Shown: piece after piece, positions 15,634 to 63,601 of the stretch
Numbering within the stretch: the stretch's first letter is position 1
Layout: the number at the start of each line of letters is the position of its first letter
Source of the DNA: Mobula hypostoma
Lineage: Eukaryota
Assembly: GCF_963921235.1 (NCBI RefSeq)
Contig: NC_086109.1
Location: 12,028,001-12,092,000 of the forward strand
Length of the DNA: 64,000 nt
Direction of reading: 5' to 3'
Made by a program: the position numbers and the translations under genes
The notes under the pieces: generated by a model
Told to the model about the DNA's origin: nothing
Seen by the model: the letters and a program-made list of their open reading frames with translations, nothing else
Databases searched by the model: none

Positions 15634-15723
15634 TTAGCGCAAAACTTCCGCACGGTTGGTGAAATCTGGGATCCTTCTCTCTTTCTCTTGGACCAGGCGG
15701 TGAGGATCTGATTGATCAGATCT
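15634..15723 (-). CDS. Candidate terminal cytoplasmic exon ([29 protein letters not shown])
   Basis: Strong acceptor ttttgcttttatag; phase 0 matches the TM-exon donor; TAA at 15634-15636; minus-strand AATAAA at 15229-15234. There is no homology support. Confidence 0.5.
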   Translation of the reverse strand, partial: RSDQSDPHRLVQEKERRIPDFTNRAEVLR

Positions 15724-18700
15724 CTATAAAAGCAAAAGTGAAATTATCAGATTGATTGACACAGGGAACCATGCAATACTGCATGATTCTATGTGCCTGT
15801 GACTTTGCACTCATTGCACTGTTACAAACACATGCTTGTGCATTGGGCAGTAAAGTGCACTTTGACTTTGATTTACATTTCATGTGGGCACCTTGCAACA
15901 GAATTCTGTCTGAAACACAGTGTCCAATATATTTTCCTGTCGAGTACAGGACTTCATTCTACACATGGGCAGAGCGTGAAAGCCTCCTTACAGTATATCA
16001 TCTTCATGCAACTTTGTTTTGACAAAAGGTTAAACGTTCATATGTGAATGTTTTTTCCCTTTAAATGATCAGTATATTTGAATTAAATTGGAGTGAATGA
16101 GAATGAGAGGTATTGCACCTTGATAGAGGTGTAGTAGATGATAAGAGGCGTAAATCTAGTGCATAGCCAGAGACATTTTCCAAGGGCAGAAGTGTCTCAT
16201 ACGAGGGGGCATAATTTTAAGTTGATTGGAGGAACACATTGGGGAGACGTCAGAGGTAAGATTTTACGCAGAGGTTGTGGGTGCATGGAACGTCCTATCA
16301 GGTGTGGTGGTAGAGGCAGATACATTCGCAGCATTTAAGAAACTCTCAAAAAGATGCATGGATCACAGAGAAGTTGAAGCCCATATAAGAAGGAAAGGTT
16401 AGAGTAAGTTAAGAGGCCAGAACAACATCATAGACCAGATTCCATGTATTGTGCTGTAATGCTCTATGTTCTATGTTGTAATTCATGAAAACCATTCGGG
16501 AGCATCTACTGACCTGGACTTACCTTTTTATCTCTCGTGAACCATGTGACAGCGATAGTGCAGATCGCCAGCAGAGCAAAGAACAGCCAGCGTCCCACTT
16601 TCCATATCATGTAACTGAACAAAGGGGAAGAGATACAGAATCAGTGGGAGAAGAGGAAACACCTTTGTATTTCAAATATTTACCTCCTGGTTCCTCTGTG
16701 AAATCAGTGAAGTGGAGCAATAAAAGCAGCAAGGCCAGGGAAGTTCAGCTGGGAGATTAATTTTACGCTGGACTGAGGGAGGGAAGATAATCTATGATCA
16801 TCATTTGGAGATACAATTGCGGAAACACATACTGTATGCTGCGACAATAGATAATGTAGATAGATTTAGAAATGGCAAGGATCGAAATAATGAGGTTGGG
16901 TAACGATGAGCCTGGGGTTAATGTAATGTCATTGCATGGTACAATGATTTATAACAGTTAGCTATACCATTGTGGTTTAGTTCCTGCCACTATTTGTAAA
17001 GAGTTTGTACATTCTCTCTGAGACTGCATGAGGTTCCTCCGGGTGCTCCGGTTTCCTCCCATATTTTCAAGACATATGGTTGATGGTTAGTCGCTTGAGG
17101 GCATGCTATGTTGGCTCTGGAAGAATAGAAACACTAACAGACTGCCCAGCACAATCTTTGCTGGTTGGATTTGATGCAAAGTGATGCATTTGTCAGGAAA
17201 TGTAGATGAGGCTTGACCAAAATCAAGCAGCAGAGACAATTTTGCAGTAAATGCTACTCTACTAATAGACTGCAAAATAACAAGTCATGAGGTGCCATAA
17301 AACATGAAAGAGCGGAAAGTAAACACAACAAGCAAGCGAGGGATTGAAGGCTAGGAACAATTTGTTGAGGCCATCTGGTTTGATGAGTGAACAGGGACTG
17401 TGGATGAGAACTGGGTTAAATAGGCTGCAGGTAATGAGCCTAGAATGAGTGGCAGGTGAATTCTATTAGTTAGGTAAAGATTGGGAGGTTCCTGCATGTG
17501 CAGGCCTGACAGCATTTCAATGTATGTTTCAATGTACATGTGACAAATATAGACAAACTTGACAAAAGAGGACACAGCTCTTTGGAAGTTCGACAACGAA
17601 TCCTCGCAGACAGATTTTGTATGAAAGCTGATAAGTGATCCATAACTTATTGAAGAATGGAGTTGGGGAATGAAATACACAGACAAATAAGGATAATCAA
17701 AAAAAAAATCATAAAAGTAATCGGGGCATCTCAAAAAATCTCAGTATTCCTTGGGCACCATGCAGCGTAGTGGTTACCACGATGCTATTACAGCTTGAGG
17801 TGTCAAAGGTCAATTCTGATGTCTTTTGTGAGGGATCTCTATGTCCTCCCTGTGGAATGCATGGGTTTTCCCTCGGTGCTCTGGTTTCCGCCCAGAGTCT
17901 AGGGATGTATCAGTCAGTTCGTTAATTGGTCTTTGTAAATCATCCTGTGATTAGGCTTAGGTTAAATTGGGGGTCACTGGGTGGTGCAGTTCAAAGGGCT
18001 GGAAGGACCTATTCCACACTGTATCTCAGTAAATAGAATAAAGAAATAAATACAGTGGTAGGTCTGGAGATGGGGGAAGCAAGATCAATAATGTATAAGG
18101 GGCTCACTCGTAACACAATGGCTAAAGAGACCATGAAGGGAATTTGCAAATTTGAGCATTTAGAGCAAGGGTTCCAACCTTTTTTATGTCAGGACTAATA
18201 CCATTAAGGACTGGGGTCATGGACCCCAAGTTGTGAACTCCTGATTTAGAGGATAAATAACCCAGAACATGTAGGGAAGTTAAGATGAAGTGAGCTACAT
18301 AAAATGCATTTTATGATGATAATAGAGAAGGAAACAAATAAGAAGAAAATCAAATATGTAAGGGAAAAGCACATAGAACATAGAATAGTACAGCGAAGTA
18401 CAGGCTCTTCAGCCAAACATGTTTTATCAGCTCTTTAACCTATTCCAATATTAATCTAACCCTTCCCTCCCACATAGCCCTTCATATTTCTTACTTCATG
18501 TGCCTATCTTAAATCTTCCAAACGCACTTGTCTCTACCAGTACCCCAGCAGCACATTTCAAGCACTTGCCACTCTCTGTGTAACAGACCTTCCTCTGATA
18601 ACCCATTATACTTTTCCCGAGACCTAACAGTATGTCCACTTATATTAAAGCTCAAAGTTCAATGTAAACATATACCTCAGGCTATACAACATTGAGATTC

Positions 18701-21700
18701 ATTTTTCTTGCGGGCATAGTCAATAAATCTATAGAATAATAACCATAACAGAATCAATAAAAGACCACCAAACTTTGGTGTTCCACCAGGGTGCAGAGCA
18801 CAGCAAACTGTGCAAACACATAAAGAAAGAAATAATAATAAATATATTAGCAATAACAATCAAGAATATGAGATGATGAATCCTTGAAAGTGGGAACATT
18901 GCATGCAGAAAAAACTCAAGTATCGATACTATTCAATTTACTAATGCCTCCTATCATCTTATACACCTCTATCAAGTCACCTCTTAACCTCCTTATGTCC
19001 AAAGATAAAATTCCTAGCTCACTCATCCCATCCTCATAAAACATGTTGTCTATACTAGGCAGCTTCCTGGTAAATCTCTTCTAAAGCTTTTCCATCTTTC
19101 CTATATGGAGTGATTCGAACTGAAGACAATACTTCAAGTGTGGACGAACCAGAGTTTTATAGAGCTGCAACAATTACCTCAAGCCTCTTAAATTAACTTA
19201 TATGACTAATGAAAGCCAACACACAATGTTCTTTGTTAGCCACCCTATCAACCTGCATGGCAACATTCTGTTTATGTCTGGGGGCAAAGGTCTTTAGGCA
19301 TACCAAGACAAGATAGGGAGGCAAACGAAAGATTCTAGGGTGACATCTTCTATTGGACTGCCTGAGCCAAATTGTCTTTTTACTTTAACATATCTCCAAG
19401 GTAACCCCATTTTAATGCTGTGTAGTCCAGAGCAATAATACTGACCTCACCCATGCCCACTCCCCAGGAACATCTTTCCTGCAGATGCAGTGACCAGCAT
19501 TGTTACCTTAACCGACCATGAAATTTGCCATCAGGGTCACATCAGAGTTGGTCATGGCAAGGCAAAGCAGCATTGCTGAGATTTGACAAATACAACCGAC
19601 ATCAAGCCGTACATCCTCTTAGGGGTGGCAAAGGGAGGGATCTGCTCTTATTTCTCAACAAGCAAAGCAGCCTGATACAAATCCAGCACTCTCTCCATTT
19701 TGATAAGTGAGATTCTAAAATAACGCTGTCAACTTTCATGTTTAAATCAACACAAGATATTTACCTTGGAGCCTCAGGATTGAAATGTGTGAGAAAGAGC
19801 AGTGTATAGGCCTCTCCCATTATTTCAGTGTGTTTGAAGTCAATACTCTCACAGGTACAACGCCAGCAAAGAAAGGTGGGTGTACCACCCTCCTCCTGCC
19901 CCTCCCATTCCCCACCCTCCGCAAGCCAGCACCACCAATAACATCACATATCTCGTAGGGCAGTAGTGTCAATCAAAACATTGACAAATGAGAACATTGT
20001 ACCTTTTGGCAGAAATGGATTGTATGTTTTTTCTTCGAGTATCATTGAAATTCATTTCTGAAGTTTCAGAATGTGAAGTCCTCGCTGAATCTGTTACAGA
20101 AGTTTCAGAATGTGAAGTCCTCATTGATTCTGTTACAGAAGTTTCAGAAATGTATCCAGATTCTGTAGAGATAAGTCATAGTCATAGTCATAGTCAAAGT
20201 CATACTTTATTGATCCCGGGGGAAATTGTTTTTTGTTACAGTTGCACCATAAATAATTAAATAGTAATAACACCATAAATAGTTGAATAGTAATATGTAG
20301 ATTATCCCAGGAAATAAGTCCAGGACCAGCCTATTGGCTCAGGGTGTCTGACCCTTCAAGGGAGGAGTTGTAAAGTTTGATGGCCACAGGCAGGAATGAC
20401 TTCCTATGACGCTCTGTGCTGCATCTCGGAGGAATGAGTCTCAGGCTGAATGTACTCCTGTGCCCACCCAATACATTATGTAGTGGATGGGAGACATTGT
20501 CCAAGATGGCATGCAGCTTGGACAGCATCCTCTTTTCAGACACCACCGTCAGAGAGTCCAGTTCCATCCCCACAACATCACTGGCCTTACGAATGAGTTT
20601 GTTGATTCTGTTGGTGTCTGCTACCCTCAGCCTGCTGCCCCAGCACACAACAGCAAACATGATAGCACTGTTGATAAAATCCAGTTTCAACAGCTTCCCT
20701 GTGCAAGTAGATGAGAAGATAGCTTGCAGAATAATGACAGCAGGTTGTGTGTTTGGATTTCCAGAAAGCATTTGATAAGGTCCTACACATGTCAGATTAA
20801 AAATTAGAGAACTAATATGGATAGAGAACCAGTTGGCAGACAGAATTCAGACAGCAGGAATGAAGAGCTCTGCTTTTGACTGGCAGTGAGTTTATAGAGG
20901 GAAACTGTTGTATTCAGTGTTATAAACCCAATCATCTCATTGTATATCAATAACATAGTCCAGAGGAATTAAATGCAATATATCAAGTTTGCAGAGGGCA
21001 CAAAGTCAGGTGACAATGTGTACTGTGAGGAGTTTCTTAAGCTTGATTTGGACTGGTTCAGAGAATCAGCAAATGAATGGCAGATGCATCATTCTGTAGA
21101 CAAATGTGAAGTGATCCACTTCAGTGTGAGCAGTCTTAGTTCAAAGATTTCTGCTTATTTTAGAGTAAAAAAACATACAAATATTCATCAATCTACAAAC
21201 GTAAATAAAGAGCTGAGAAATGATGCTAAAGGGAAATCAATGCTAAAGGATGTAATGTAAAGGAATAAAAAGAAATGAAACATAGTGCTTCTGAAAAATC
21301 CATCACTTTTATCGATGAGATAAAGAAAATTTCTTAGATAGTGATTAATTAATTGATAATTAAAACAATTACATCATGTGGGTAATGTGCTAAATCTTAG
21401 CCAATGAAAAATGACAGAAGTGATAAACTATTTGTTTAGTTGCTATACCTCTTTCTGCCAGTGAGATTGCCAGTATTTGCTCTGATGGTCAGATATCTGT
21501 CACATGTTTGGAGGGTCTTGAGAGAAAGTGTTTGGTTTCTGTGACCTGCTTCAGCAAGGGAGTACTTTGGTGCTGCTGTTTGCATGGAGGCAGTGGGTGA
21601 AGCCCAGAAGTCTCAGGAAGGTGGATGTCCACACAAAGGAGCTGGAGGAACTCAGCAGGTCAGGCAACATCTCTGGGGGAAAATGCACGTGTGATGTTTC

Positions 21701-23776
21701 TGACTGAGATGCTTCACCAGGACTGGAAAGAATGAGGGGCGAGGATTGAATAAAAGGGTGGGGAGAGGAGGAGGAGCATAAGCTGACAGCTGATAGCTGA
21801 ATCTAGGTGAGAGGAGGAAGGCAGGAAGGTGGGATGGAGCAAAAAAGAGTATGATAAATTGGGAGGTGATAGGCGGAAGAGGCAAAAGGTTAAAGAAGGA
21901 GGAATCTGTTTGGAAAGGACAGTAGACTATGGAATAGAATAAGTAGGTGGGGCACTAGAGGGAGAAAGTGTGGGCACAAGGGCAGTGGAGGGGAATGACA
22001 AGGAGTAAAAGGGCAAGATGGATAAAGGAAAACAAAAGGATTCTGATGGGACAAGATCTCATCAGATTTCACTTAATCTGATTCCCACCGGTAATAGGTG
22101 GATGAAGAGGCTGGATGTTTCGGAGTGGATGGTCAGTGGGTTCTGGGGGTGGGGGCTCAGAGCACATTTATGGGGATACAGGTGGGGGTGCGGGTTAGGA
22201 GGGACTGATTGAGATAGGCCAGGGATTGGACTGGCCTGCTTTGGAAGAACTGAATGCAGTCTGTTGAGCTCTGGGAAATGATTCCCTTTTTATGGTTTTC
22301 CGGTACTTAGCCCATGAGCAACAGGATTCTCGCTGATCTGTTATGGCTGGATTATTAGTTTTACTCTGAATGCAAACCTCTGATAGGGTGACATTCCATA
22401 TGTTTCTGAGGCAGGAAAATTGTGCTGATCCTCCCAATAGAAATTGGTGTCCATCAGTGGGTCAGACCCCACACTGGGTGATTCCCTGATTCCTGTTCAC
22501 TCCTCACAAGACTCTGCACTGCAGTGGTCCCTCGGGATGTGGGAGCTGTCGTAACCCTTCACAGTGAAGACACTGAGCAGATATTTATGTGGGGGCAGAA
22601 AGTAAATCCGTGGTAAATGTACCAACAGATTCCTGTAGATATAGGCGGAACATTGGACAGTGACCATGAATTGGGTGAGATGAACATGAGTTGGGTTTCC
22701 TGACTCCTGACAACTCATCGTAAGGCTCTGCCCTGTTGCTGAGCCTCAGGATATCAATGCTACCCTGAACATTCCCAGAGAAAACTTGGATCAGACATTT
22801 CAGAGGAGACATAAAATCAGTCACTGCACAACATACCGTCAGATACTTGCAGATGTACGTTAAGCATTGGATCATAACCTGATGTTGCAATTGCACAGCT
22901 GTACCATCCTGTATCTTCAGAGCGAAGATCCACCATTGTAACTGTAAATATCCTCCGTTCCGGGTTATCTGTGATTGATACTCGTCCACGCTGTCCGTGA
23001 TGCCCATTTGTTTCCACTAAAACTGAACAATGACGACTCCATCCATGGCACCAATACTTTGTGTGTGAGCTGTACATTGCTTCATAGTGACAATCGATTG
23101 TGATCGCTCTTCCCACAACTCCTGTTACACTTTTCTCTGCCCACAATGCACCTGAAACTGAAGAGAACATGTTTCCGTAAATCAGAATCAGGTGTAATAT
23201 GAACAGCACATGTTGTGAAATTTGTTAATTTGTGGCAGTACTACAATGCAATACAGGATAATATAGAACCAAAAACTGTCCATTGCAGTATTTATACACG
23301 AGGGCTGATTGATAAGTTCATGGCCTGGGGTAGAAGGAGATGAGCTATTAACTTCAAACTTTCCGCGTTATCAGTCAAAGAGTTGAACTGCACGTGCATG
23401 TAACGAGAGTGTCTTGGACCTCCAGGTGGTCCAGAGCAGGGGTGATTGATACGTTTGTGGCCTAAGGTAGAGGGAGATGAGTTATACAGCTCTCGTTACA
23501 TGCAAGTGCAGTTCAACTCTTTGAGTGAAAATGCAGAAGGTTTGAAGTTAATAACTCATCTCCTTCTACCCTAGGCCACAAACGTATCAATCACCCCTGC
23601 TGTGGGCTACTTTCTGGAGGTCCAAGACACCGACTTCTATAAAGAAGGGATCCTATGCTCCACGACTGCTGGACTAAGTGTGTAAATGTAGGAGGGGACA
23701 ATGTTGAAAAATAAATGTGCTAGGTTTTCTAAAATTGACTCCTTCTACCTTAGGCCACAAACTTATCAATCATTCC

Positions 23777-23826
<50 letters not shown>

Positions 23827-26800
23827 ATATATATAAAATAGTTAGATTAAATATGCAGTGAAAAAACAGAAACAAAAATATGTGACAAAGTGTTCATGGG
23901 TTCACTGTCAGTTCAGAAATCGGATGGCAGAGGGGATGTAGACCCTTGGGATATTGGAACTGTCCTGACCCTTCGCAGTGAAGACACAGAAGATATTTTA
24001 GTGGAGAACAGAAAGTAAAGCCCTGATAAATGTACCATCAGATTCTTGAAGATATAGGTGGAATATTGGACCATGACCATGAATTGGGTGAGATCAACAT
24101 GAGTTGGGTTTCTTGTCTGCTGCGTATTCCTAGTAGGACTCTGCACGACTGCGGAGCCTCGGGGATATCAATGATACCTTGGCCGTTCCTAGAGAAAACT
24201 TGGATCAGACATTTCAATAGAGACATAAAGTCAATCACTGCGTTACATACCGTCAGACACTTGCAGATGTACGTTAACCATTGGGTCATAACCTGATGTT
24301 GTAATTGCACAGCTGTACCATCCTGTATCTTCAGAGCGAAGATCCTTCATTGTAACAGTAAATATCCTCCGTTCCGGGTTATCTGTGATTGATACTCGTC
24401 CACGCTGTCCGTGATGCTCGTTTGTTTCCACTAAAACTGAACAATGACGACTCCATCCATGGCACCAATACTTTGTGTGTGAGCTGTACGTTGCTTCATA
24501 GTGACAATCGATTGTGATCGTTCTTCCCACAACTCCTGTTACATTTTTCTCTGCCCACAATGCACCTGAAACTGAGGAGAACATGTTTCCGTAAATCAGA
24601 ATCAGGTGTAATATCAACAGCACATGTTGTGAAATTTGTTAACTTTGTGGCAGTACTACAATGCAATACAGGATAATATCGAACAAAAAACTATCCATTG
24701 CATTAATAATATACGAGGGATGATTGATAAGTTTGTGGCCTAAGGTAGAAGGAGTCAGTTTTAGAAAACCTAGTACATTTATTTTTCAACATAGTCCCCT
24801 TCTACATGTACACACTTAGTCCAGCAGTCGTGGAGCATACGCATCCCTTCTTTGTAGAAGTGGTTCACACCAGTGGTGATTGATAAGTTTGTGGCCTGAG
24901 GTAGAAGGAGATGAATTATTAACTTCAAACATTCTGCATTTTCACTCAAAGAGTTGAACTGCACGTGCATGTAACGAGAGTGTCTTGGACCTCCAGGTGG
25001 TCCAGAGCAGGGGTGATTGATAAGTTTGTGGCCTGAGGTAGAAGAAGATGAGTTATACAGCTCTCGTTACATGCACTTGCAGTTCAACTCTTTGAGTGAA
25101 AATGCAGAAGGTTTGAAGTTAATAACCCATCTCCTTCTACCTCAGGCCACAAACATATCAATCACCCCTGCTGTGGGCCACCTTCTGGAGGTCCAAGACA
25201 CCGACTTCGACAAAGAAGGGATCCATATGCTCCACAACCGCTGAACTAAGTGTGTAAATGTAGGAGGGGACTATGTTGCAAAATAAATGTGCTAAGTTTT
25301 CTACAATTGGCTCCTTCTACCTTAGGCCACAAACTTGTCAATCAACCCTTGTGTGTGTATATGTATTAAGTAGTTAGATTAAATATGCAGTGAAAAAACA
25401 GAAACAAAAATATGTGACAAAGTGTTCATGGGTTCACTGTCAGTTCAGAAATCGGATGGCAGAGGGGATGTAGACCCTCGGGATATCGGAACTGTCCTGA
25501 CCCTTCGCAGTGAAGACACAGAAGATATTTTAGTGGGGAACAGAAAGTAAAGCCCTGATAAATGTACCATCAGATTCTTGAAGATATAGGCGGAACATTG
25601 GACCACGACCATGAATTGGGTGAGATCAACATGAGTTGGGTTTTTTGACTGCTGCGTATTCCTAGTAGGACTCTACACTACTGCGGAGCCTCGGGGATAT
25701 CAATGATACCTTGGCCGTTCCTAGAGAAAACTTGGATCAGACATTTCAATAGAGACATAAAGTCAATCACTGCGTTACATACCGTCAGTTACTTGCAGAT
25801 GTACGTTAAACATTGGGTCATAACCTGATGTTGTAATAGCACAGCTGTACCATCCTGTATCTTCAGAGCGAAGATCCTTCATTGTAACAGTAAATATCCT
25901 CCGTTCCGGGTTATCTGTGATTGATATTCGTCCACGCTGTCCATGATGCTCATTTGTTTCCACTAAAACTGAACAATGACGACTCCATCCATGGCACCAA
26001 TACTTTGTGTGTGAGCTGTACGTTGCTTCATAGTGACAATCGATTGTGATCGCTCTTCCCACAACTCCTGTTACATTTTTCTCTGCCCACAATGCACCTG
26101 AAACTGAGGAGAACATGTTTCCGTAAATCAGAGTCAGGTTTAATATCAACAGCACATGTTGTGAAGTTTGTTAATTTGTGGCAGTACTACAATGCAATAC
26201 AGGATAATACAGAACAAAAAAAAACTGTCCATTGCAGTATTTATATATATTGAATAGTTAGATTAAATATGCAGTGAAAAAACAGAAATAAAAATAAGTG
26301 ACGAGGTGTTCTTGTGTTCAATGTCCATTCAGAAATTGGATGCAGAGGGGACGAAGCTGTTTCTGAAATTCTGAATGCATGCTTTCAGGCTTCTGTACCT
26401 CTTTCCTGAAGGTAACAATGACAAGAAGGCATGTCCTGGGTGGCAGAGGTCCTTTTTGAGGCACTGTTTCTTGAGGATGTCTTGTAAACTGTGGAGTCGA
26501 GTATCCGTGATGGGTCTGACTAATTTGACAACTCTCTGCAGCTTACTTTGATGCTGTGCAGTATCAGCGTTCCCTCCCGCTCCCCCCCCCCACCCGGCCC
26601 ACATCCCCAAATACCAGACAGTGACGCAGCTAGTCAGAATGCTCTCCACAGTACATATGTAGATATTTAGGTGACATACCAATTCTTCTCAAAATCCTAA
26701 TTAAACACAGCCACTGTCTTGCCTTCTTCACAGCTGCATCAATTTGCTGGGGTCAGATTACGTCCTCAGAGATACTAATGCCCAGTAACCTGAAATTGCT

Positions 26801-47646: not shown

Positions 47647-47803
47647 GGGGGACTTCCGGTAGCGCTCATGGAGTGAAGTCGCGTTCTTGACTCGCTCCAT
47701 TACCTCTGAGTTTTTTCTCTCTATGGTCAGCTATACTTTAATTAACTATTAAGGCATCAATTTTTACAATACTTTGAATTAAACTGAATTCTCTGACAAT
47801 TGG

Positions 47804-48703: not shown

Positions 48704-49424
48704 TTGCCTTTTTTTAATTTTCTCCGTTGATCGGAGGCTGTGAATTGGTTGGTTTTAACTTTTCTGTGCCCTATTTGGGCAGAAAAGTTTACTTTCGATT
48801 TCTTAATATGGCTGCTAAACTTTCTTTTTAACTGCGTCATTTCTTTCTTTTCCCAGGGGATTCTGGGTGGTTACTTCCCTTTTGTCATCTTACGTATTTC
48901 CTGTGCGGCCTTAAATTTTGTAGTTTTTTTTAAATTTTATTCTGTTTTGCTTTTTATAATCATTTTATGTTAATAATCCTATTTTTTTTGTTGCTGTGTC
49001 TATTCATGAGTTTGAGGTTTATTGTGGTTTTTTTTTAATATATACTTTCCGGCTTTTGTTCTGTTCTGTGTGTATTTTAATTGAGCTAACTTTTTTTTAC
49101 TTATTTTTTTTACTGTTTTACAATTAGCTGATCCTTTTCATATTTATACCTTTTTTTTAGGGAGCGTATACCGGAAGTCATGGGGGTAGTTTTAGCGCTT
49201 GCTTCTTTCTGGCGGGTCTGCTTTAGATTTCGCCTTGGGGTCCTGGGGTGGGGGGCGGTGGGAGGGGCTTCACGTTTTAGTTTGTTTCTCTTTGGGCTAT
49301 ATACATTATTGAAGTATTGGTTGCGTCCTTTTCCCCGGTATCTTTTGTATGTTCTGTTTCCTCTCCGGGTTTGTGGGTCGCGCCTATTGTCAATCTTCCT
49401 TGTTATGGGTTGACTTTAGGATTT

Positions 49425-52400: not shown

Positions 52401-53201
52401 ATGTCTTTTGAACAATTATCTAATAAATATAACTTATCAAGAATACATTTTTTTAGATATTTACAAGTTAGAAATTTCCTAAGTACTATACTTTCTTCCT
52501 TTCCAATGCTTCCTCCTATATATATTTTAGATTCGATAATTAACCTTAATCCATGTCAGAAAGGTGCATCGGCTATGATTTATAATATTATTATGAAACT
52601 TAGGAAAGCTCCATTTGATAAGATTAGGGTAGATTGGGAACAGGAATTGGGGCTTACCATTTCTGTGGATGATTGGGGGCAGATTTTACAATTAGTTAAT
52701 ACTTCCTCTATTTGTGCTAAACATTCCCTAATTCAATTTAAAGTGGTTCATAGAGCACATATGTCCAAAGATAAGTTAGCGCGTTTTTACTCGCATATTA
52801 ATCCTTTCTGTGATAGATGTTCGGGGCAGATAGCCTCTTTAACTCATATGTTTTGGTCTTGCCCTACTTTGGAAACTTTTTGGAGAGATATTTTCAATAT
52901 TATTTCTAAGGTATTAAATATAGATATCTCTCCTCACCCTATTACTGCTATCTTTGGACTACCTAAAATTTCTAGTAATCTTTCCCCTTCAGCCCGTAGA
53001 ATGATTGCATTTCTTACTTTAATGGCGAAAAGATGTATTTTACAACATTGGAAAGAGCTTAATGCTCCAACTACCTTTTTTTGGTTTTCTCAGACGATTT
53101 TATGTTTGAATCTGGAGAAAATTAGAAGTAACCTTTATGATTCTTCATTTAAATTTGAACAGATTTGGGGACCTTTTATTCGATATTTTCATTTAATGTA
53201 A
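49425..53201 (+). CDS. L1 ORF2p (APE endonuclease, RT, CCHC), 1258 aa from ATG
   Basis: SWNTNGL, LQETH, GDLN, SRIDY, SDH; KAPGPDG, YRPISLLN, QGCPLSP, YADD; CDRC...HMFWSC; uninterrupted. Confidence 0.95.
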   Translation: MESIINFVSWNTNGLNHPIKRKKVFKVFRRLKAQILFLQETHVRRGDRLRFFKFWKGQQFHSNSNAKIRGVSIFIDSSVTFIQQDIISDPNGRFLLVSGLLFNKKVVLVNVYAPNMDCPEFYKSLFDQFPNLNEFSLIWGGDLNTCLSPALDRSAPLRTLPNKSANLINFFLSDSGSTDIWRFLHPQEKDFSFFSHVHHSYSRIDYFFIDSRLIPSVIKCDYDSITISDHAPLKLSIKIMANIPNNRQWRFNSLLLQDSDFVNFMNEQIELFFTINHTEDISVNTLWDTFKAYIRGQIISYSVALRKKQKQEEMVIVDKIKEIDKKYVMAPSEELYKQRTELQMEHSLLLSSSIVNQLKKTRSDFYVHSDKIGKLLANQLKSNYVKSQINQIYNQNDRLILDHVGINQTFCDFYSSLYQSESPRDSKYMNDFLDKLDFPLISQDMSSLLDTSITMDEIKNVIFSMNLGKAPGPDGFTVEFYKCFASLLIPWLYKVFEASLKLGKLPESFNRASISLILKKDKDPAQCASYRPISLLNVDSKVFSKLLANRLEKVLPSIISEDQTGFIKGRYSFYNIRTLLNIVYTPSQNVPECVISLDAEKAFDRVEWPYLFKVLEMFNFSLKFISWIKLLYHSPVASVRTNSLNSPFFPLFRGTRQGCPLSPLLFDIALEPLAIAIRESSNITGITRGLKSHKLSLYADDLLLYISNPERSIPAVLELLAQFGLFSGYKLNLSKSELFPINKHLPLYYKFPFKLINNYFSYLGIKITCKHKDLFKTNFLPLIDHITQLSSKWFPLYLTLIGRINAVKMFFLPKFLYVFQALPIFVPKSFFDKVDSKISSFIWQNKNPRLGKIHLQKAKRDGGLALPNFRFYYWAINIRHMKFWLLDRDILSIPKWVALELQSVQGYTLGSILGSSLPFDSKRLKQVSNPIVKYALRIWFQFRKFFDLNQFGLAIPILGNIFFPPSFTDRAFQTWKTKGILRFLDLFLDGSLMSFEQLSNKYNLSRIHFFRYLQVRNFLSTILSSFPMLPPIYILDSIINLNPCQKGASAMIYNIIMKLRKAPFDKIRVDWEQELGLTISVDDWGQILQLVNTSSICAKHSLIQFKVVHRAHMSKDKLARFYSHINPFCDRCSGQIASLTHMFWSCPTLETFWRDIFNIISKVLNIDISPHPITAIFGLPKISSNLSPSARRMIAFLTLMAKRCILQHWKELNAPTTFFWFSQTILCLNLEKIRSNLYDSSFKFEQIWGPFIRYFHLM

Positions 53202-55240: not shown

Positions 55241-56399
55241 GCACGTACTGTTTTTGTTTTATGTACTTTGCGAACTTCAAACATTTGGATGTCTGATATC
55301 ATCTGTGATTGTGATTGTGTCTGTGATTTCTAATCGGTCTTCCTTCTGCATAATTCCTCATTTATATTCTAAGAAAACAGTTCACTTCAGACAACTATTT
55401 AGGTAATGAGACCTGGGTGACGGATGACAGGTCTGCTCTGAACAAAGCTCAGCACTGTGGCGGTCACACTTGGTGACCCTGAGCTCTGCAAGAAATCGGT
55501 TCATGACCTTTATAAAGTAATCGGCAATGCTGAGACACAAAACCAGTCCTAAACTGATTCCCAGACTGGCTGTCAGATGCGGCAGGGTTTAATTGTGATA
55601 ATAGGCTACAAGATGAAGCAGTATGTTTGGTCACACCACATCCCAATGAAACTTATGCATTCTAAGCACGTTTTCAACAGAAAGGGTTTGGAATATCATC
55701 ACTTGCCCTGACAGCCTCCAAATGCTCCTGAACCTACAGTCACCATTGCACACCTCCAATAAATCTTGAGACTGAACCCACAGAATGCACCTGGACCTGC
55801 TGGGGGGCCCTGTGGTCAGCATGGACAGACTGGGCCGAAAGGCCTTTATCCATGTTGTATTGCTCTGTAACTCTACGAGATCGTTGTGAGTGCTGAACTG
55901 AGTCACATGGACACTGAACATGTGAGATACAAAAGAACTTTATTCAACACAGCAGATCTAGAGAATCTATTTCTGCTCTCTCCACATAAAACAGTAGTGA
56001 TGTTTTATACTTTGTAAACAAAAGACAGATTTCACTGCATTTTAATAGCTGTCATTGCCTAACCCATAAATTTAATTTTGAAAATACACAGGCAATTTTT
56101 GAAGAATTGTAGATTTACAATGGAAGTACATCACAGTGAACAGCACATCTAAATTTTAATATACTAGTGGCTGGACCAGGAGTTTCTGAGCATATATACA
56201 CACCAAGAGCCCAAAATATATATCTTTTATTACAGAGTTGAGCAATGACCCTCGGCTATACAAAGGTAGGTATATGCCTTTAACTGTGCTTATAAAGGAG
56301 AAGACCACCTAATGTCTGCACTGATTTTATCCTGAAGGTTTCATTATGTGCCGTTTAATATCACCATTCATCTATTGTCTTACTTGTGGTGTACGGAAT

Positions 56400-56835
56400 C
56401 AGATGTGGCCACCCTTGGTGTGGAGCAGCAACAATATACATTCTGTTTGGGTAGCCTGAAACGATGGAATGAATATTGACTTCTAATTCCCATTTTTAAA
56501 AAATTCCCTCCCCTTCCCCTCTTTTTTATTCCCCTCTCTGGTTTCTCACCTGCCTATAACTTCCCCCTTGGTCCCCTTCTCCTTCCTTTTCTCTGATGGT
56601 CTACTGTTCTCTCACACATCAGATTCCTGCTTCTCCAGCCCTTACTCTTTCCAACCCCCCTGGTTTCACCTATCACCTGCCAGCTATGCTCCTTCTCCTT
56701 CCCCCGCATTTCTATTCTGCCACCTTCCCCCTTCTTTTCCAGTCCTGATGAAGGGTCGCGGCCCAAAGTGTCAACTGTTTGTTCACTCCGATGGATGCTG
56801 CCTGACCTGCTGAGTTCCCCCAGCATTTTTTGTGT
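56400..56835 (+). mobile_element. Penelope-like 3'/terminal repeat fragment
   Basis: GIY-YIG-associated remnant (gaggagcaacac.tcatattc-like) followed by cagtcCTGATGAaggg...ggatgctgcctgacctgctgagttc. Confidence 0.6.
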
Positions 56836-56984
56836 GTTGCTTCAGAATCAGAACGTCCCACACTCAATGATTGGTTTCAAAACCCTTCGACAATCAGTGG
56901 ATTACATTTTATTTCAGGAAGCTTTGTTCCCACTTTTAATTAATACCAACTATGTCTATAATTTCATAACTCCAGAATAATACA

Positions 56985-58130
56985 TGACAGTGAAGAAAAT
57001 GATTGATGATGGGAGTGCGGTGGATGTTGTAGACATGGTCTTTTGTAAATCTTTTGACATGGTCCCTCATACTATGTTGGTCCACAAAATTAAGTCACAT
57101 ATGATCCAGAGTGGGTTTGTAAGTTAGAAACAAAGTTGGAATGTTGATAGACAACTGAGACCAGTGCTAGAGGGGTGATTATCTGACTGGAGGCCTGTGA
57201 CCAGTGGAGCTTTGTAAGGTTCAGTGCCTGGACCTCTGTTACTTATAATAGATATAAATGATTTTCATGAAAATATAGGTACTTTTGTAGAGAAAACAAA
57301 ACTGTGGATAGTGAGGAATGTGGTCAAAGGATACAGCAGTATATAGATCAGCTGGGAGTTTGGGCAGAGAAGAGACAGATAGACTTCAAATCACACAAGC
57401 ATGAGGCGTTGCATTTTGAGAGGTCAAACGTAAGACAAAATTATGCAGTAACTGGCAGGACCCTTTGGAGCACTGATCTACAATGGGATTGTGGCATGCA
57501 AGTCCACAGCTCCCGAAAGTAACAATGCAAGTGAACAGGGCAGTAAAGGCGGTGTATGGCATGCTTGCCAACATTGAGTATGAAAGTTGGAAAGTCATGT
57601 TGCAACTGTATAAAACTTCAGCACTATTTGGAGTAACTGTGTGTAGTTTTAGTCTTCATGCTATAGAAAGAATGTGGAGAGTTGGAGATGGTGCAGTAGA
57701 GGTTAACCATGGTTTGGCCTGGATTAGAGTGTAATAGCTATATGGAGAGCGTGGACAAAGTTGGAGTGTCAGAGCCTGAGGGGCGACCTGTTGGAAAGGT
57801 GTGTAAGATTATGACAGGCATAGACAGGGGAGATAGTCATAGTTCCCTGGGTAAATGTATAAAATAATAAAGGACTTACATTTAAGGTGAGCACAGGAAA
57901 TCTTTGAAGGAGATGTGAGAGATTATTTTTACACAGGGAGTATAAATGGTGCCTGGAATGGTCTACCAAGGGATGTGGTGGAAGCAGATACAATAGCAAC
58001 ATTGAAAGGTATTTCAACAGACACATGGACAGGTACGAACATGTGCAGGCAGATGGGATTAGTTAGATTGGAATAATGGTCAGCACAGGGAGGGTGAGTC
58101 AAAGAGCATTTCTCTGTGTTATACCCTGAT
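56985..58130 (+). mobile_element. Old CR1 RT/3' fragment
   Basis: gcggtggatgttgtagacatgg...tggaggcctgtgaccagtgg...degenerate 3' end. Confidence 0.75.
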
Positions 58131-59053
58131 ATGATCTAAATTCAATACTTTTTGTTTCACTGAAATGGCCTCTGAAAGTGAGAAAATAGACTTTCAGTCA
58201 GACTCATATAGCAATCTCTCATGAAATAACAAACTCAAAATCAACAGAATCTTTCTGGGAAAACTTGGCTGTACTCAGTCCATTGTAAGTCTATCCTTCC
58301 TCAGGTGGGATGAACCAGACCTATACAAAATGGTCCAGATGCAGTCTTAACAGAGCTCTATATAATTGGAACATGATAATCACTCTGTTAGTATTTAAAT
58401 AGCTGAAAGAAATTATAACTGAAGAGGGGGTGTTGGGAGTGGGGTGCCAGAGTGTATATTGTAGAAGTCAGAATGAGGGACAAGAGCATTTTAACATCTG
58501 TAGAGATGATCGAGCCTTCAAGGGGACCACAATTTTGTCGTGGCTTGGAGGCTTGTGTGCCTCAAGACCCGGAGAGCTATGTTGACTGGATTCAAGGCAT
58601 TATGCTTTGGCTCTTGATAGGGTTACACTTCCAAACAGCTCAAAGGGTAGACAATCAGGGTGATCCACCAGTCCTCCAGCTTCGGTGCGTTCAGATCGGG
58701 CCTGACAAACCTGACTGGTAAAACAAGACTGTTACAGAAACAGCAATTGAAAATTCCTTCTGTATCTGAGTGTGATGGTATTCTTGAAACTCCGCCCAGG
58801 ACTTGCATGATGACCAGTAGTGAAAACTGAGAGGAAGCTACTGACATGATGAAGGAAACCCTGAACACCACCAGAGACGGAGGACCTGCGCTGCTGCCCC
58901 AAACGCAGCGGCGTAACGGGCAGTCACACAGAGATGATCTGGACTCAGACCCTCATTGCCAATGAAGAGGAACTGGAAAGCAGGGTGTGTGGAAGAAGCA
59001 GCTCAGAATCAGCTTGACAAAGTAATTACGTGGATAGATTCAGGCAGAAGAGT

Positions 59054-59335
59054 TACACTCAGTGGCCACTATATTAGGTACATCTGTACATCTGCTCGTC
59101 AGAGTAAATACCTAATCAATCATGTGGCAGCAACTCGATGCATGAAAGCATGCATGTCGGCATGTTGTGCATTGAGGAGTGTTCTTCTACAACCACTGCT
59201 GTAACAAATGGTAATTTAACTTACTGTCAACGGAACCTCTTGTTCATATCTGCATGCTTTTATGCATTGAGTTGTTACATGACTGGCCGATCAGATATTT
59301 GCATTAACAAGCAGGTGTACAGGTGAACTGAATAA
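59054..59335. mobile_element. Tc1-like MITE remnant just downstream of the inhibitory-receptor stop
   Basis: TA|CACTCAGTGGCCACTATATTAGGTAC TIR; same family as 5890-6436. Confidence 0.65.
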
Positions 59336-59391
59336 AAAACCTAACTCTTCTGCCTCAATCTAGCCATATAATTATTTTGTCAAGCTTATTC

Positions 59392-59640
59392 CTAGTCTTG
59401 TGGAGTAGGAGGAGAGAAAACTTTCCGTTTTGGCTTTGCGCAATGGGTTTGAAATTTGATATCTGCATAGGTGACGTTGTCCTCATCAGTAACGGAGTAG
59501 ACTGCTCTTGATTTCTTTTTAAATTTCACATCTACATACACAATTCCAGTTTCATTTTTGGCCGACTGGACAGCCGCCTCATTGTTTCGAACATGGTGTA
59601 GATCTGTATAAACGACATTTTCTTCCAACGTGGCCATTTC
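59392..59640 (-). CDS. Terminal cytoplasmic exon of an inhibitory receptor, 3 ITIMs
   Basis: tttatttcag acceptor, phase 0; EMATLEENVVYTDL...GIVYVDV...AVYSV...NVTYADI...PQD*. Confidence 0.9.
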   Translation of the reverse strand, partial: EMATLEENVVYTDLHHVRNNEAAVQSAKNETGIVYVDVKFKKKSRAVYSVTDEDNVTYADIKFQTHCAKPKRKVFSPPTPQD

Positions 59641-61058
59641 CTGAAATAAAAAATAAATTCCGAGATCTATTTTATGACTGATGAATGTGAAAGTTGAGGG
59701 TGTGAAAAGTTACAGGGAGAAGGCAGAATAATAGGTGAGAGGGAAAATAAATCAGCTGTGATTGAAGGACAGAGAAGTCTTGATGGGCCAAATGGACTAA
59801 TTCTGATCCTATCCCATATGGTCTATGGTCGTAATTTCATGATTTTTTTTATAAACCATCTTATGTTTATATCTCAAGTTCTACTCTCCTCTGTAAGTGA
59901 AAATACCTTCTTTATTCAATAAAACAATTTGATACTCTTTCAAGCAACTACCAGATCACCCTCAGTTTTCTGTTTTTAAATAAACTCTGATTCTTTCAAT
60001 CAGCTTGTAGAATTTCATTTTCCAGAGTGTTTGATAACAGCTGTGATACTTAGTGAGGACCCACAACTAACTGTGCAACAACAGCATGTTGCTTTACAAC
60101 ACCAACACATGAAGCCGTTCGGTGTTTCACAGGGGTTCACTGAGAGAAGAGGTTGAAAATGAAGTTGGGGATTATTTGGGCAAATTACAATACTTTTATG
60201 GTTTTCAGTCAGAATGGTTTGTCGTAGGAGGTTAATTGATCACATGGGTGCAATTGGGTGGCTCGTGGGTCGGAAGGACCGATTACTCTGCTGTACCTCT
60301 AACGAATAAAAGTTAAGAGGACAGAATTGCAGGAGTTCATGGATTTGTGGGATTTGTCTAGTGTGTGGGTTTTGGGCAGCTGAAGCTACTGATATTGGTG
60401 GTGGGATTCAGAGACTGGAGGATGCACAAGAGGAACACAAAGTTCTCTGAGGGTACAGATCTTGGAGTTAAAGTGATGTCAACAAGAGAAAATGTATGGC
60501 AGAGCAGAATCCTCCAACAATCTCCACCCTGCAGACAGCAGCAGAAGTAAACCCAGGTCACTGGCGCTGTAATAGCGTTACGCTAACCGCTATTCTACCG
60601 TGTCATCCCCAATTTGTTATTCTGAATAGAACTGCCCTATTTTTTTCTGATTTCACATCAGACTTTGAGACTCAGAGGGAATATACAAAATGTAAACTGA
60701 AAAGTCATTGAACCCAAAGACAGATTTACACAATTAGATGCTCCATCTCTAACAGTAGAGAAAGGACCAATCTCACTCTTCACCATTCAGTAATGATAAT
60801 AAAGACTGGTGCCACTGTGAAGAATAGTCAAGTAAAATATTATGGATAGACTTAAGGAAAATGTGGATGAGCACAAGAGAAAGGGACAAATAACTGGAAG
60901 GTTATGCTGATGGGATTCAATGAAAGGAGTGCTCGTAGGTTTGTGTAAAGTATTAATACTGGACTGGACTAGTGGGGATGACTGATCTGTAAACTCCCAT
61001 GAAATCCAATCTTTAAACATTCTGAATCACTCAGACAATTTATACTTAATGTCCATAC

Positions 61059-61105
61059 CTGGGTTTCATTGTTGCCTTCTCTGTGAGACGTATTGTGCTT
61101 GGATT
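61059..61105 (-). CDS. Juxtamembrane cytoplasmic exon (ESKHNTSHREGNNETQ)
   Basis: gtattttgcag acceptor, CAG|GTATGG donor; phase 1-to-0 exactly bridges the TM and ITIM exons. Confidence 0.8.
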
Positions 61106-61146
61106 CTGCAAAATACAATATTACTGCTAAAAATTCCATGGCTGTT

Positions 61147-61287
61147 NNNNNNNNNNNNNNNNNNNNNNNNNNNNNNNNNNNNNNNNNNNNNNNNNNNNNN
61201 NNNNNNNNNNNNNNNNNNNNNNNNNNNNNNNNNNNNNNNNNNNNNNNNNNNNNNNNNNNNNNNNNNNNNNNNNNNNNNNNNNNNNNN
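61147..61287. other. Assembly gap (141 N)
   Basis: Run of n. Confidence 1.
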
Positions 61288-61289
61288 TG

Positions 61290-61560
61290 GCCCTGCAGCC
61301 CTTTGAGCTTCGCCACCCCAGCAACCCCCGACAATCCAGATTAACCCTATCCTAATCATGGTGCAATTTCCATTGACCAATTCACCTACCTGGTACGTCT
61401 TTGGACTGTGGAAGGAAACTGGAGGACCCGGAGTGTATCCATGCATCCCACAGGGAGGACATACAGAGACTCCTTTCAGGACGGCACTGGAATTGAACTG
61501 CAAACTCCGGAACGCCCCGTGCTGTAATAGCTTCGCGCGAACCGCTAGGTTACCATGACA
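61290..61560 (-). mobile_element. V-SINE-like element
   Basis: Reverse core tttggactgtggaaggaaactggaggacccgg. Confidence 0.7.
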
Positions 61561-62289
61561 CCCATACTGAATCTCAGAACCACGGGAACCCCAGCTGCAA
61601 CACAGTAATGATTCTTCACACAGAGCAAACCTCTGCTCTGGTTACTACACAATGTTCTGTTGTTTGAAAGGACCACCTTCTCTGCTACTGAAAACTGAAA
61701 TTTTCCATCTTTGAACATTGTAATGAGGGGTTTAGACTACAATTTTTGTTTTAATTGCCACAAATTTTATCTGTTCTACCGAGCATATTCCTTCATTTTT
61801 TGTGTGTGCATTTAGACCGTATTACTCCTTCACAATATGATGGAGCAGATTACCTGACAATATTCACACAGTCCCATGAACATCTCACTGATCTCTCCAG
61901 GACTCTGTGGCAGATTGTCCCTCAGGAGGAAGGAACAAACTGCCCAAAATAAAAATCACCCCATTTTCCTACTGGCCACAAAACCTCCTTTCAAATTCAA
62001 CACTGAGATCAACAATTTCATGTGGAATCCCAATGTCCCATTCTCAATAAATGGTTCTGATGGCCTTGGACTATTAGTGGATGTTAGGTACCTCCAGATA
62101 TGGTTTGCCATTTTATTTCTACCCACTAGACATCACTTCTCATTATAAGCTTACCGCAGTTGTTCATTCCTTACTACTATGTTTCTAAGCAATTGACCTT
62201 CGGCATCAAGTCAACCATCTTATAATCACTTGTATTTTTATTTATTCATTCATTAGAAACACTTTGTTGCAAGTCAAAGGAATTTTAAT

Positions 62290-62570
62290 TAATATTTGAA
62301 TGGAGTAAGCCTCTCTGGCCCTTCAACACAGCAACCCCAACAAGTCTGATTAACCTTAACCTAAACATGGGACAATTTACAATGACCAAATAACATACTT
62401 GGTGTACCTTTGGACTGTGGGAGGAAACTGGAGTACCCTGGAAAAGTTGATACATTCAATGGAGAGGATGTAGAAACTCCTTACAGAATTTCACGGAATT
62501 GAACTCCAAACTTCAAACTGTCCCCAGCAGTAATAGCGTCACGCTGACCTCTATGCTACTGTGGTGCCCA
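62290..62570 (-). mobile_element. V-SINE-like element
   Basis: Reverse core tttggactgtgggaggaaactggagtaccc. Confidence 0.7.
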
Positions 62571-62796
62571 TCTCAGAATCATTTCAAAAAAGGAGAACAC
62601 TGACTTAATCTATGGCAACTATTTCCAATCAGAGCAGGGAAATTTCTCCAGTGACATGCAGTGAGTGGTAGATTGATAAAAGATACACCTGATTTTTTTT
62701 TTAAATAAGAATTACATGGGAGTATGTCTTTACACATACATTGTCGAAATGATTGCATTTAATTGGAGGTTGTACTGAGGAACAGCTTATTGAATA

Positions 62797-63193
62797 TTGA
62801 GGGGGGATCTGATTGAAGCGTATAAGATCCTAAAGGGATTGGACAGGCTAGATGCAGGAAGATTGTTCCCGATGTTGGGGAAGTCCAGAACGAGGGGTCA
62901 CAGTTTGAGGATAGAGGGGAAGCCTTTTAGGACCGAGATTAGGAAAAACTTCTTCACACAGAGAGTGGTGAATCTGTGGAATTCTCTGCCACAGGAAACT
63001 GTTGAGGCCAGTTCATTGGCTATATTTAAGAGGGAGTTAGATATGGCCCTTGTGGCTACGGGGGTCAGGGGGTATGGAGGGAAGGCTGGGGCGGGGTTCT
63101 GAGTTGGATGATCAGCCATGATCATAATAAATGGCGGTGCAGGCTCGAAGGGCCGAATGGCCTACTCCTGCACCTATTTTCTATGTTTCTATG
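62797..63193 (+). mobile_element. Young CR1 3' end
   Basis: [20 protein letters not shown]...; (TTTCTATG)n tail. Confidence 0.92.
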
Positions 63194-63509
63194 AATATAC
63201 TTTTAAATACAACAGCTAATTCTCCAAAACTGAGTAGTACAGGTGAGACCATCTAAATCTTTCTTCTATCCAGCCTTGTGGTTCTCTGCCATTTCACAGT
63301 TGATGTGAGATTCCATCGCCTGATGTTTCAGGAATAATGGAGTCACCAGGTTACAATGGAAACAACACCATTCATTCATGTGTTGTAAACCAACACATCA
63401 ACACTCTGATCCTGGCTTTTTGTTGACTGCAACCAAATCAAGTTCCTTAAGATTCAGCAGCTAGTTATCATATTCATCATGAAATAATTAAAGGAAAAAT
63501 GAAACCTAC

Positions 63510-63601
63510 CCCTGTTTTTTCTCTTCAGGTAGCAAAGTGGACAAACAACAAGCAGTATGAGTAGAATCCCAATGACACTGAGCACAGTTGTGTAAGTATG
63601 T
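63510..63601 (-). CDS. Transmembrane exon of the inhibitory receptor (HTYTTVLSVIGILLILLVVCPLCYLKRKNR)
   Basis: ctttaccacag acceptor, G|GTAGGT donor, phase 2-to-1; uncharged helix followed by KRKNR; same phase-2 start as the TM exon at 16524-16614. Confidence 0.88.

Follow-up and report, generated by a model that had tools for sequence, protein, structure and literature searches.

A stretch of 64,000 nucleotides from Mobula hypostoma (contig NC_086109.1, positions 12,028,001 to 12,092,000), hereafter the window, appears to be part of the modular domain immune-type receptor (MDIR) gene cluster of a myliobatiform ray. It carries two receptor genes in head-to-tail arrangement and a dead third copy, all on the minus strand. 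The two genes, B and A, are read here as an inhibitory/activating pair, for which signaling through ITIM-recruited phosphatase and through an adaptor, respectively, is proposed, and the third copy as a pseudogene; on the sequence comparisons presented below, we give this reading a probability of about 0.78.

The MDIRs are a CD300/pIgR-like multigene family that was first described in the clearnose skate and for which skate cDNAs, along with 'pIgR-like' labels given by automatic annotation, had until now been the main source. As the family is already named, the locus adds another member to it, which is correct but ordinary, and the current picture of paired-receptor evolution is unchanged by it. 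What it provides is a clear look, at the genomic level, at how a paired-receptor unit is organized in the most ancient lineage of jawed vertebrates, with its exon phases, separate leader exon, head-to-tail order, and decaying sibling.

Organization of the Locus

The stop codon of gene B (59392) and the start codon of gene A (44136) are spaced approximately 15 kb apart, with gene A lying downstream on the same strand. An earlier note on this DNA had described same-strand neighbors of parallel exon design, and this is indeed the arrangement: both transmembrane (TM) exons enter in phase 2 (ccacag/A CAT ACT in gene B; gttcag/T TAC ATG in gene A). Its assignment of an uncharged TM and three ITIMs to one gene (gene B, exons 63601-63510 and 59640-59392), and of a short, Tyr-free tail behind a TM with Lys and Arg to the other (gene A, with a tail of 34 residues), was likewise borne out. 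With respect to the charges themselves, one correction applies: both Lys and Arg are present in the gene A TM, but the conserved charge is the Arg alone, the Lys position being variable.

The Inhibitory-Type Gene

Only the 3' end of gene B lies within the window, its ectodomain exons falling beyond 64000, and its product is best followed through XP_062922431 (P0156), a RefSeq protein of M. hypostoma of 948 aa whose gene spans 54.6 kb. The TM exon (63510-63601, minus strand; 92 nt, phase 2 in and phase 1 out, with an AG acceptor and a GT donor) encodes HTYTTVLSVIGILLILLVVCPLCYLKRKNR, in which 30/30 residues are those of P0156. The hydrophobic core of this segment is without a charged residue, and its best 19-residue Kyte-Doolittle mean is 2.87. 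Contigs of paralogs with ~90% identity end exactly at 63601, the edge of this exon. A 47-nt cytoplasmic exon follows (61059-61105, minus strand; phase 1 in, phase 0 out; acceptor ttgcag, donor gtatgg; 16/16 residues as in P0156), which was missing from the earlier note and encodes ESKHNTSHREGNNETQ, or (E)SKHNTSHREGNNETQ with the split codon. Without this exon, the TM exon (donor in phase 1) and the ITIM exon (phase 0) could not be joined in frame. The latter, the terminal coding exon (59392-59640, minus strand; stop codon 59392-59394; 83/83 residues as in P0156), carries the three ITIMs, VVYTDL (59599-59616), IVYVDV (59527-59544), and VTYADI (59458-59475). The three exons splice in frame, and the tail is of 98 residues; at least three ITIM matches were obtained in 5 of 100,000 composition-preserving shuffles of it.

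An assembly gap (N) occupies 61147-61287, in the intron between the TM exon and the 47-nt exon, with 41 nt separating it from the downstream acceptor at 61105. It is crossed by no reading frame, and P0156 is continuous there (KRKNR-ESKHN) with nothing missing; among the Logan contigs of four runs on 58000-63999, none spans it. A dispersed repeat (61326-61565) abuts the right flank of the gap, and a second copy is found at 62335-62571. Upstream of the TM exon, a degenerate stalk-like open frame (63877-63999, minus strand; ..ENVQRRGSATWSAMLSVREETTNQS..) was considered as the stalk exon of gene B and rejected, there being no phase-2 GT donor in frame and P0156 having a different stalk.

The part of gene B encoded in the window comprises 128 residues, and every one of them is identical in P0156 (128/128), the ectodomain of which is V-C2-V-C2-V-C2 with three V domains of the family found in gene A. 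Through this identity, the ectodomain of gene B is presumed to be V-C2-V-C2-V-C2 of the same V family and to lie mostly to the right of the window. V-set domains are also present in 15/15 of the homologs that share the ITIM tail of gene B.

The Probable Activating-Type Gene

Gene A is complete, with seven exons, AG/GT at all splice sites, and an uninterrupted open reading frame of 446 aa, all on the minus strand. Its leader exon (44100-44136; ATG start, donor GTGAGT, phase 1) is the sole leader-like match in the window and is in frame with the V exons, from which it is separated by an intron of approximately 18 kb packed with retroelement (LINE) ORFs. Three V-set exons of 321 nt, each of phase 1-1 and bounded by AG/GT, are then encountered: D1 (25783-26103; Pfam V-set E 3.8e-14), D2 (24251-24571; E 1.7e-14), and D3 (22837-23157; E 6.7e-13). 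These are mutually 96-97.5% identical, with 8 nt differences between D1 and D2, and their nonsynonymous:synonymous codon differences, which are few in number, stand at 4:4, 8:4, and 7:4. Gene A would provide from one to three V domains, depending on how many of these exons enter the mRNA, and no C2. The Ser/Thr-rich, repetitive stalk exon (20003-20162; phase 1 in, 2 out) ends in ...IQSISAK(S) and resembles the stalks of the Hemitrygon akajei proteins P0004 and P0098. It leads into the TM exon (16524-16614; phase 2 in, 0 out), which reads YMIWKVGRW... with the Lys at 16599-16601 and the Arg at 16590-16592. The tail exon (15634-15723; acceptor tatag; stop codon 15634-15636) is devoid of Tyr, as is the entire 34-residue tail from TRDKK on, and matches the tail of P0098 at 16/18 residues.

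Just 17 uncharged residues follow the TM Arg, and since this is the sole uncharged stretch of the helix, the helix must take in the Arg, close to the outer leaflet. In 34/34 family occurrences drawn from rays, skates, and sharks, this Arg is invariant, with K, D, T, M, E, N, or S at the Lys position, and the Arg is accordingly the residue to mutate. A short-tail motif, [KR][RS]D[EQ]S[DE]P..L, is found in most of the ray and skate members listed, and the carpet-shark members have a short tail of another kind. Protein database searches returned no counterpart of the gene A protein, and hence it is possible that the gene lacks annotation, is not expressed, or is handled as a pseudogene.

The Dead Sibling

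The third copy, which had been called a pseudogene from the letters alone, does carry stops and a frameshift; it is situated at 7146-4262, to the left of the range 15634-63601 in which the earlier note had placed the whole cluster. Within this copy (4262-7146, minus strand), the V exon (6795-7146) is interrupted by a frameshift and two stop codons (TAA and TAG), two stops also disrupt the C2 exon (5586-5835), and a remnant of the stalk exon survives at 4262-4342. No leader or TM exon belonging to it was found within the 64-kb window. A dead copy downstream of the pair is as expected under birth-and-death evolution.

Family Membership and Pairing

The proteins nearest to the window genes are all from rays, skates, and sharks, in keeping with the earlier reading of a cartilaginous-fish paired-receptor locus; they include elasmobranch proteins named 'pIgR-like', 'CMRF35-like', or 'FcRL5-like', together with MDIR2, MDIR3, and MDIR5 of Rostroraja eglanteria, and an exhaustive search with D1 yielded 2816 matches. 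The skate MDIRs had previously been named as an analog only, and they prove to be direct homologs by sequence. In a comparison that took in MDIR2, MDIR3, and MDIR5, D1 of gene A was 65% identical to V1 of MDIR5 (E 9e-44), and the TM segments of the two agreed at 17/30 residues, including an exact WKVGRW within the common W-x-V-G-R-W. The gene B tail was 38% identical to that of MDIR3 (E 1e-15), its last two ITIMs lying opposite ITIM-type motifs. The V domains of the window fall within a 95%-supported clade that also contains MDIR2, MDIR3, and MDIR5, and the solved structures closest in fold are pIgR, CD300f, CD300a, and NKp44.

The ectodomains are modular, being V-C2-V-C2-V-C2 in P0156, V only in gene A, and V with C2 in the pseudogene; the number of Ig domains per family member, C2 among them, ranges from two to six, and the original MDIR abstract is said to have described ectodomains with one to six Ig domains from different subfamilies. 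ITIM forms and positively charged TM forms occur in one multigene family, the Arg-TM motif alone being present in 31 and ITIMs alone in 70 of 247 family proteins retrieved, and each species has dozens of paralogs on one chromosome-sized contig. MDIR1-5 of the clearnose skate Rostroraja (Raja) eglanteria (Cannon et al., 2006, Immunogenetics 58:362, as presented in PMC3031540) are summarized there in like manner, as a multigene family with activating and inhibitory forms in which V and C2 domains are combined in modular fashion.

Whether the ITIM gene has an ectodomain of the same IgV family could not be seen from the window itself. The answer obtained indirectly, through P0156, is that it does: the first V domain of P0156 is 79% identical to D1 of gene A, and D1 is 73-79% identical to the V domains of Arg-TM and of ITIM proteins alike. 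A tree of V domains from activating and inhibitory members, as had been suggested earlier, was constructed, and in it the Arg-TM and ITIM types interleave, with 20 type changes needed, of which at least 8 are forced by starred branches. With Mobula birostris, an ITIM protein (P0167) and an Arg-TM protein (P0198) with near-consecutive accession numbers have ectodomains that are 87% identical. These comparisons show that a single V family is common to the ITIM and Arg-TM arms, which have exchanged partners repeatedly. Two features of a paired-receptor system are found at this locus, namely like ectodomains on opposite signaling modules, with that of gene B judged through P0156, and linkage in one cluster, on the same strand and ~15 kb apart.

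Proposed Signaling and Alternative Readings

By analogy with CD300A, LILRB, and KIR-L, the phosphorylated ITIM tyrosines of gene B would recruit SHP-type phosphatases and damp signaling. Gene A is probably activating, its Arg being proposed to pair with the TM Asp of an ITAM adaptor and thereby to signal. In the FcR-gamma-coupled receptors GPVI, FcalphaRI, NKp46, LILRA, and OSCAR, the TM likewise has its Arg toward the outer leaflet. Gene A has the same layout of Arg, ~17-18 uncharged residues, acidic or basic residues, and a short tail without tyrosine motifs, whereas the ectodomains of those receptors are of an unrelated C2 type. In a survey of 2014, cartilaginous fish were reported to lack the FcR gamma chain (PMC4016189), and for this reason no adaptor is assigned to gene A; a literature search on elasmobranch adaptors gave nothing past that survey (PMC4016189). 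A possible extension, which we hold as tentative and rather doubtful, is that the Arg-TM/short-tail module of gene A and MDIR5, occurring from carpet sharks to devil rays, would be an ancient activating arm with an adaptor still to be identified, and that gene A would be an unannotated, lineage-specific activating receptor, with an ectodomain that a recent triplication of the V exon had remade as a stack of three V domains resembling pIgR.

It is conceivable, and in our estimation unlikely, that gene A, though a genuine MDIR gene, does not encode an activating receptor, with the Arg (and Lys) serving as ordinary lipid-water interface charges and the short form acting as a signaling-null decoy, a co-receptor, or a shed or adhesion molecule, as was originally read for MDIR5-type proteins. 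The Lys and Arg do lie where the hydrophobic segment begins, on its N-terminal side, with flanking Trp residues of the kind typical of membrane interfaces, and an Arg so placed could snorkel instead of pairing with an adaptor. MDIR5 has the same TM and was reportedly classed in the 2006 abstract as being without typical activating or inhibitory motifs; the conserved tail motif could mean an adaptor-independent role, and the reported absence of FcR gamma points in the same direction. Nevertheless, the 17 uncharged residues that follow the Arg are too few to span the bilayer without it, an Arg that is invariant while the neighboring Lys position is free to vary fits a specific intramembrane contact, and GPVI, FcalphaRI, and NKp46 likewise have 17-18 hydrophobic residues after a TM Arg. 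Less likely still is that gene A is not an independent functional gene at all, representing either a very young, unexpressed duplicate that is turning into a pseudogene or a set of exons that the gene B unit employs only alternatively or by read-through. An annotated protein matching gene A is absent from the searches, intron 1 of 18 kb is full of LINE ORFs, and V exons that are 96-97.5% identical are too young for visible decay, the codon counts not being decisive; furthermore, gene predictors are seen to fuse neighboring MDIR genes, as in P0002 with its internal TM. RNA support for gene A was not found either. Run searches gave only small runs of uncertain type, with few query words, and the Logan contigs of four such runs on 58000-63999 were mainly repeat-derived or from the ~90%-identical paralogs; no splice joint of gene B is listed in those contigs and no transcript of gene A or B was seen, a result that weighs neither for nor against expression. 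Set against this reading are the seven intact exons of gene A with canonical splice sites, its own ATG, a signal peptide, and a donor exon, the closure of the gene B ITIM exon by a stop codon, and the annotation in H. akajei of P0004 and P0098 with the same stalk, TM, and tail. In addition, the adjacent true pseudogene displays what decay looks like locally.

That the genes are instead pIgR orthologs, transporting IgM or another immunoglobulin across epithelia and not paired innate receptors, is highly improbable, despite the fact that chains of pIgR are the best solved-structure match (E 6.6e-54 summed over domains) and that most relatives are named 'polymeric immunoglobulin receptor-like' in RefSeq. 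The possible three tandem V domains of gene A do resemble pIgR, and tandem V-type domains, each on its own exon, are a feature shared with pIgR and the teleost PIGRL clusters; in zebrafish, an expanded cluster of 25 similar PIGR genes is known (PMC4016189). The TM of pIgR is, however, uncharged and its tail long and furnished with sorting signals, whereas the ray family is without a transcytosis-type tail and ends either in ITIMs or, after the Arg-TM, in 34 residues. Moreover, pIgR has V-type domains only (PMC4016189), and the ray family alternates V with C2 (P0156, P0013). The dozens of paralogs on a single contig per species also argue against pIgR orthology.

Relation to Known Receptor Families

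The mammalian CD300/CMRF35-like molecules are one point of comparison. The V-set of the window family has four cysteines, as would fit the additional C-C' disulfide found in this group, and matches the structures of CD300f (E 1e-21) and CD300a (E 1e-15). CD300 is also a clustered paired family, with inhibitory members that carry an ITIM tail (CD300A and CD300F) and, next to them, activating members in which the tail is short and the TM charged (CD300B, C, D, and E). It differs in having a single V and no C2, and the charged TM residue and adaptor may differ as well. Classification of the ray family as CD300 proper was considered and set aside, given its two to six Ig domains in place of a single V; it would work like CD300. 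For annotation, such genes are better called MDIR/CD300-like than pIgR or FcRL5, and gene A is apparently absent from the gene set.

With the skate MDIRs, the window genes share direct sequence homology, modular V and C2 domains, and activating and inhibitory forms. The host here is a myliobatiform ray and not a skate, and gene A stands apart in having a tandem run of three V exons, without a C2 exon, and a Ser/Thr stalk of repetitive sequence. Whereas the MDIRs were obtained from cDNAs, the window makes visible the genomic head-to-tail order, the exon phases, and the neighboring pseudogene.

Organization of the Locus

All of the receptor exons in the window lie on the minus strand. Six-frame translation and ORF listing revealed three near-identical V-set exons (22.8-26.1 kb; E 1e-13 to 1e-14 against Pfam V-set) and a broken V exon (6.8-7.1 kb). 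Hydrophobic exons lie at 16.5 kb, with Lys and Arg, and at 63.5 kb, without charge, and an exon rich in Tyr spans 59.4-59.6 kb. Retroelement ORFs constitute most of the remaining sequence, and there is a single N run (61147-61287). The earlier note had described same-strand neighbors with TM exons both starting in phase 2, and this was seen for gene A, a receptor gene of the putative activating type with an Arg-containing TM and a short tail, and gene B, an ITIM receptor gene of the inhibitory type represented by its 3' end. A full-length L1-like ORF (49317-53201) is present in the 15-kb spacer between the two. The third copy is indeed a pseudogene, its V exon (7146-6795, minus strand) being interrupted by two stop codons (TAA and TAG) and a frameshift and its C2 exon (5835-5586) by two stops, but it lies to the left of the interval in which it had been placed (15634-63601). 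A stalk remnant remains at 4342-4262, and no TM exon for this copy was found in the 64-kb window.

Structure of Gene A

The exons of gene A were placed by tblastn with homologues from a search with D1, its first V-set exon (2816 matches). Following a single leader exon found by pattern scan (44136-44100), the gene model comprises the Pfam V-set exons D1 (26103-25783), D2 (24571-24251), and D3 (23157-22837), a stalk exon (20162-20003), a TM exon starting in phase 2 (16614-16524), and a tail exon (15723-15634), all on the minus strand. AG/GT was observed at every junction, the phases are compatible (1; 1-1 for each of the three V exons; 1-2; 2-0; 0), and the seven joined exons give an open frame of 446 codons; as a predicted ORF, gene A is intact. 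The homologue protein searches returned no annotated protein matching gene A, and the RefSeq annotation of the presumed source species seems to lack the gene. In Hemitrygon akajei, two annotated proteins (P0004 and P0098) share the stalk repeats with gene A, and also its TM and tail.

In each V exon (22837-26103) the acceptor is doubled in tandem, tcag|TTTCAG|GT, and the two sites are in frame with a spacing of 6 nt; the upstream one agrees with the homologue proteins (..SD-VSG-ALW..), and use of the downstream one would remove Val-Ser. The first intron (26160-44100, approximately 18 kb) is full of LINE/RT-type ORFs, including those on the plus strand at 28736-32730 and 35059-37497.

Structure of Gene B

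Gene B was read from a TM exon (63601-63510, minus strand; phase 2 in, phase 1 out) and an ITIM exon (59640-59392). As the former leaves in phase 1 and the latter starts in phase 0, an intervening exon is required, and one of 47 nt was located at 61105-61059. The joined peptide reads ...CYLKRKNR-ESKHNTSHREGNNETQ-EMATLEENVVYTDL...IVYVDV...VTYADI...PTPQD-stop, in keeping with the uncharged TM and three ITIMs claimed for this gene; three or more ITIM matches arose in 5 of 100,000 shuffles of the tail.

The N run is an intronic assembly gap, 41 nt upstream of the acceptor of the 47-nt exon. It is crossed by no reading frame, homologous protein P0156 has no extra residues at this point, and none of the public-run contigs aligned to the window bridges it. 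A dispersed SINE-like repeat occurs nearby in two copies (61326-61565 and 62335-62571), which share 71-80% identity at a distance of about 1 kb; the former directly adjoins the gap and probably explains it. With public sequencing runs matching the window, few query words were present and the aligned contigs cover repeats. Gene B itself is not covered by them; two contigs at approximately 90% identity stop exactly at 63601, which fits with use of this exon boundary in paralogous transcripts.

P0156 (XP_062922431) is a Mobula hypostoma protein of 948 amino acids, named by RefSeq as polymeric immunoglobulin receptor-like and encoded over 54.6 kb. The window is identical to it in the TM exon (30/30), the small exon (16/16), and the ITIM exon (83/83), whereas other Mobula, Hypanus, and Hemitrygon paralogues are only 68-87% identical in the same parts. 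The window thus derives from M. hypostoma or a very close relative, and P0156 is most likely gene B's own model, judging by these sequence matches. Its order is V-C2-V-C2-V-C2-stalk-TM-ITIM tail, its first V domain is 79% identical to D1, and V-set domains occur in 15 of 15 proteins with the gene B type of tail. An unrelated ectodomain family for the ITIM gene, which the earlier note had set as refuting its reading, is not borne out by the V domains of P0156; the DNA reading itself stops at 64000. A stalk-like open frame (ENVQRR...REETTNQS) at 63877-63999 on the minus strand resembles the stalk exon of the family. As the gene B stalk it was rejected, having no usable phase-2 donor and not being used by P0156, and it probably represents a duplicate of the stalk exon that has decayed within the last ectodomain intron.

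Family Identity and Pairing

Named relatives were found in rays, skates, sawfish, sharks, and one chimaera, and include the modular domain immune-type receptors (MDIR) 2, 3, and 5 of the clearnose skate Rostroraja eglanteria. The first V domain of MDIR5 is 65% identical to D1 (E 9e-44) and its TM shares 17 of 30 residues with that of gene A, including WKVGRW; the MDIR3 tail is 38% identical to the gene B ITIM exon (E 1e-15), with its ITIM-type motifs opposite the last two of gene B. The solved structures nearest to D1 are those of pIgR, CD300f, CD300a, and NKp44. The proposal of a cartilaginous-fish paired-receptor locus is supported by these elasmobranch and chimaera relatives and the skate MDIR homology. 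The locus belongs to a family known since 2006, one already widely annotated in elasmobranch genomes under misleading names.

Of 247 family proteins retrieved, the Arg-TM motif occurs without an ITIM tail in 31, and an ITIM tail without the motif in 70. In a tree of 88 N-terminal V domains from both arms, a check proposed earlier, the two types are intermixed: 20 type changes are needed compared to a shuffled mean of 26.3, well-supported branches force at least eight, and Arg-TM and ITIM proteins appear several times as sister tips. Mobula birostris P0167 (ITIM) and P0198 (Arg-TM), with near-consecutive accession numbers, have ectodomains that are 87% identical and first V domains that are almost identical, diverging only at the stalk/TM boundary. 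This pattern, read from the protein sequences, is what classically marks paired receptors, and the two form a cleaner textbook pair than genes A and B.

Transmembrane Charge and the Predicted Activating Role

The Lys/Arg-containing TM and short, Tyr-free tail described for gene A were confirmed, the tail from TRDKK on having 34 residues and no Tyr. Charge was counted with the motif W-x-[VI]-x-?-W, the charged position being left free, and Arg occupied that position in 34 of 34 occurrences; the position of the noted Lys held K in 18, D in 7, T in 4, M in 2, and E, N, and S in one each. Because only 17 uncharged residues separate this Arg from TRDKK in gene A, the helix must include it. Receptors coupled to FcR-gamma have a comparable placement of Arg in the TM. 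Cartilaginous fish yielded no FcR gamma chain in a 2014 survey (PMC4016189). If expressed, gene A would be activating with a probability of roughly 0.6-0.7.

A short tail motif, [KR][RS]D[EQ]S[DE]P..L, is kept in most of the ray and skate Arg-TM members listed (P0004, P0023, P0061, P0098, P0184, and others), and the short tail of the carpet-shark (Hemiscyllium) members differs. In Mobula hypostoma, the Arg-TM isoforms P0061, P0183, and P0267 have a C-terminal extension, EKETRHEHFQSQYRGLKGEQGMEIKAGC, to which window positions 550-633 (minus strand) are 64% identical. Given that a weaker look-alike lies within retroelement sequence at 26345-26404, this extension may be an exonised repeat.
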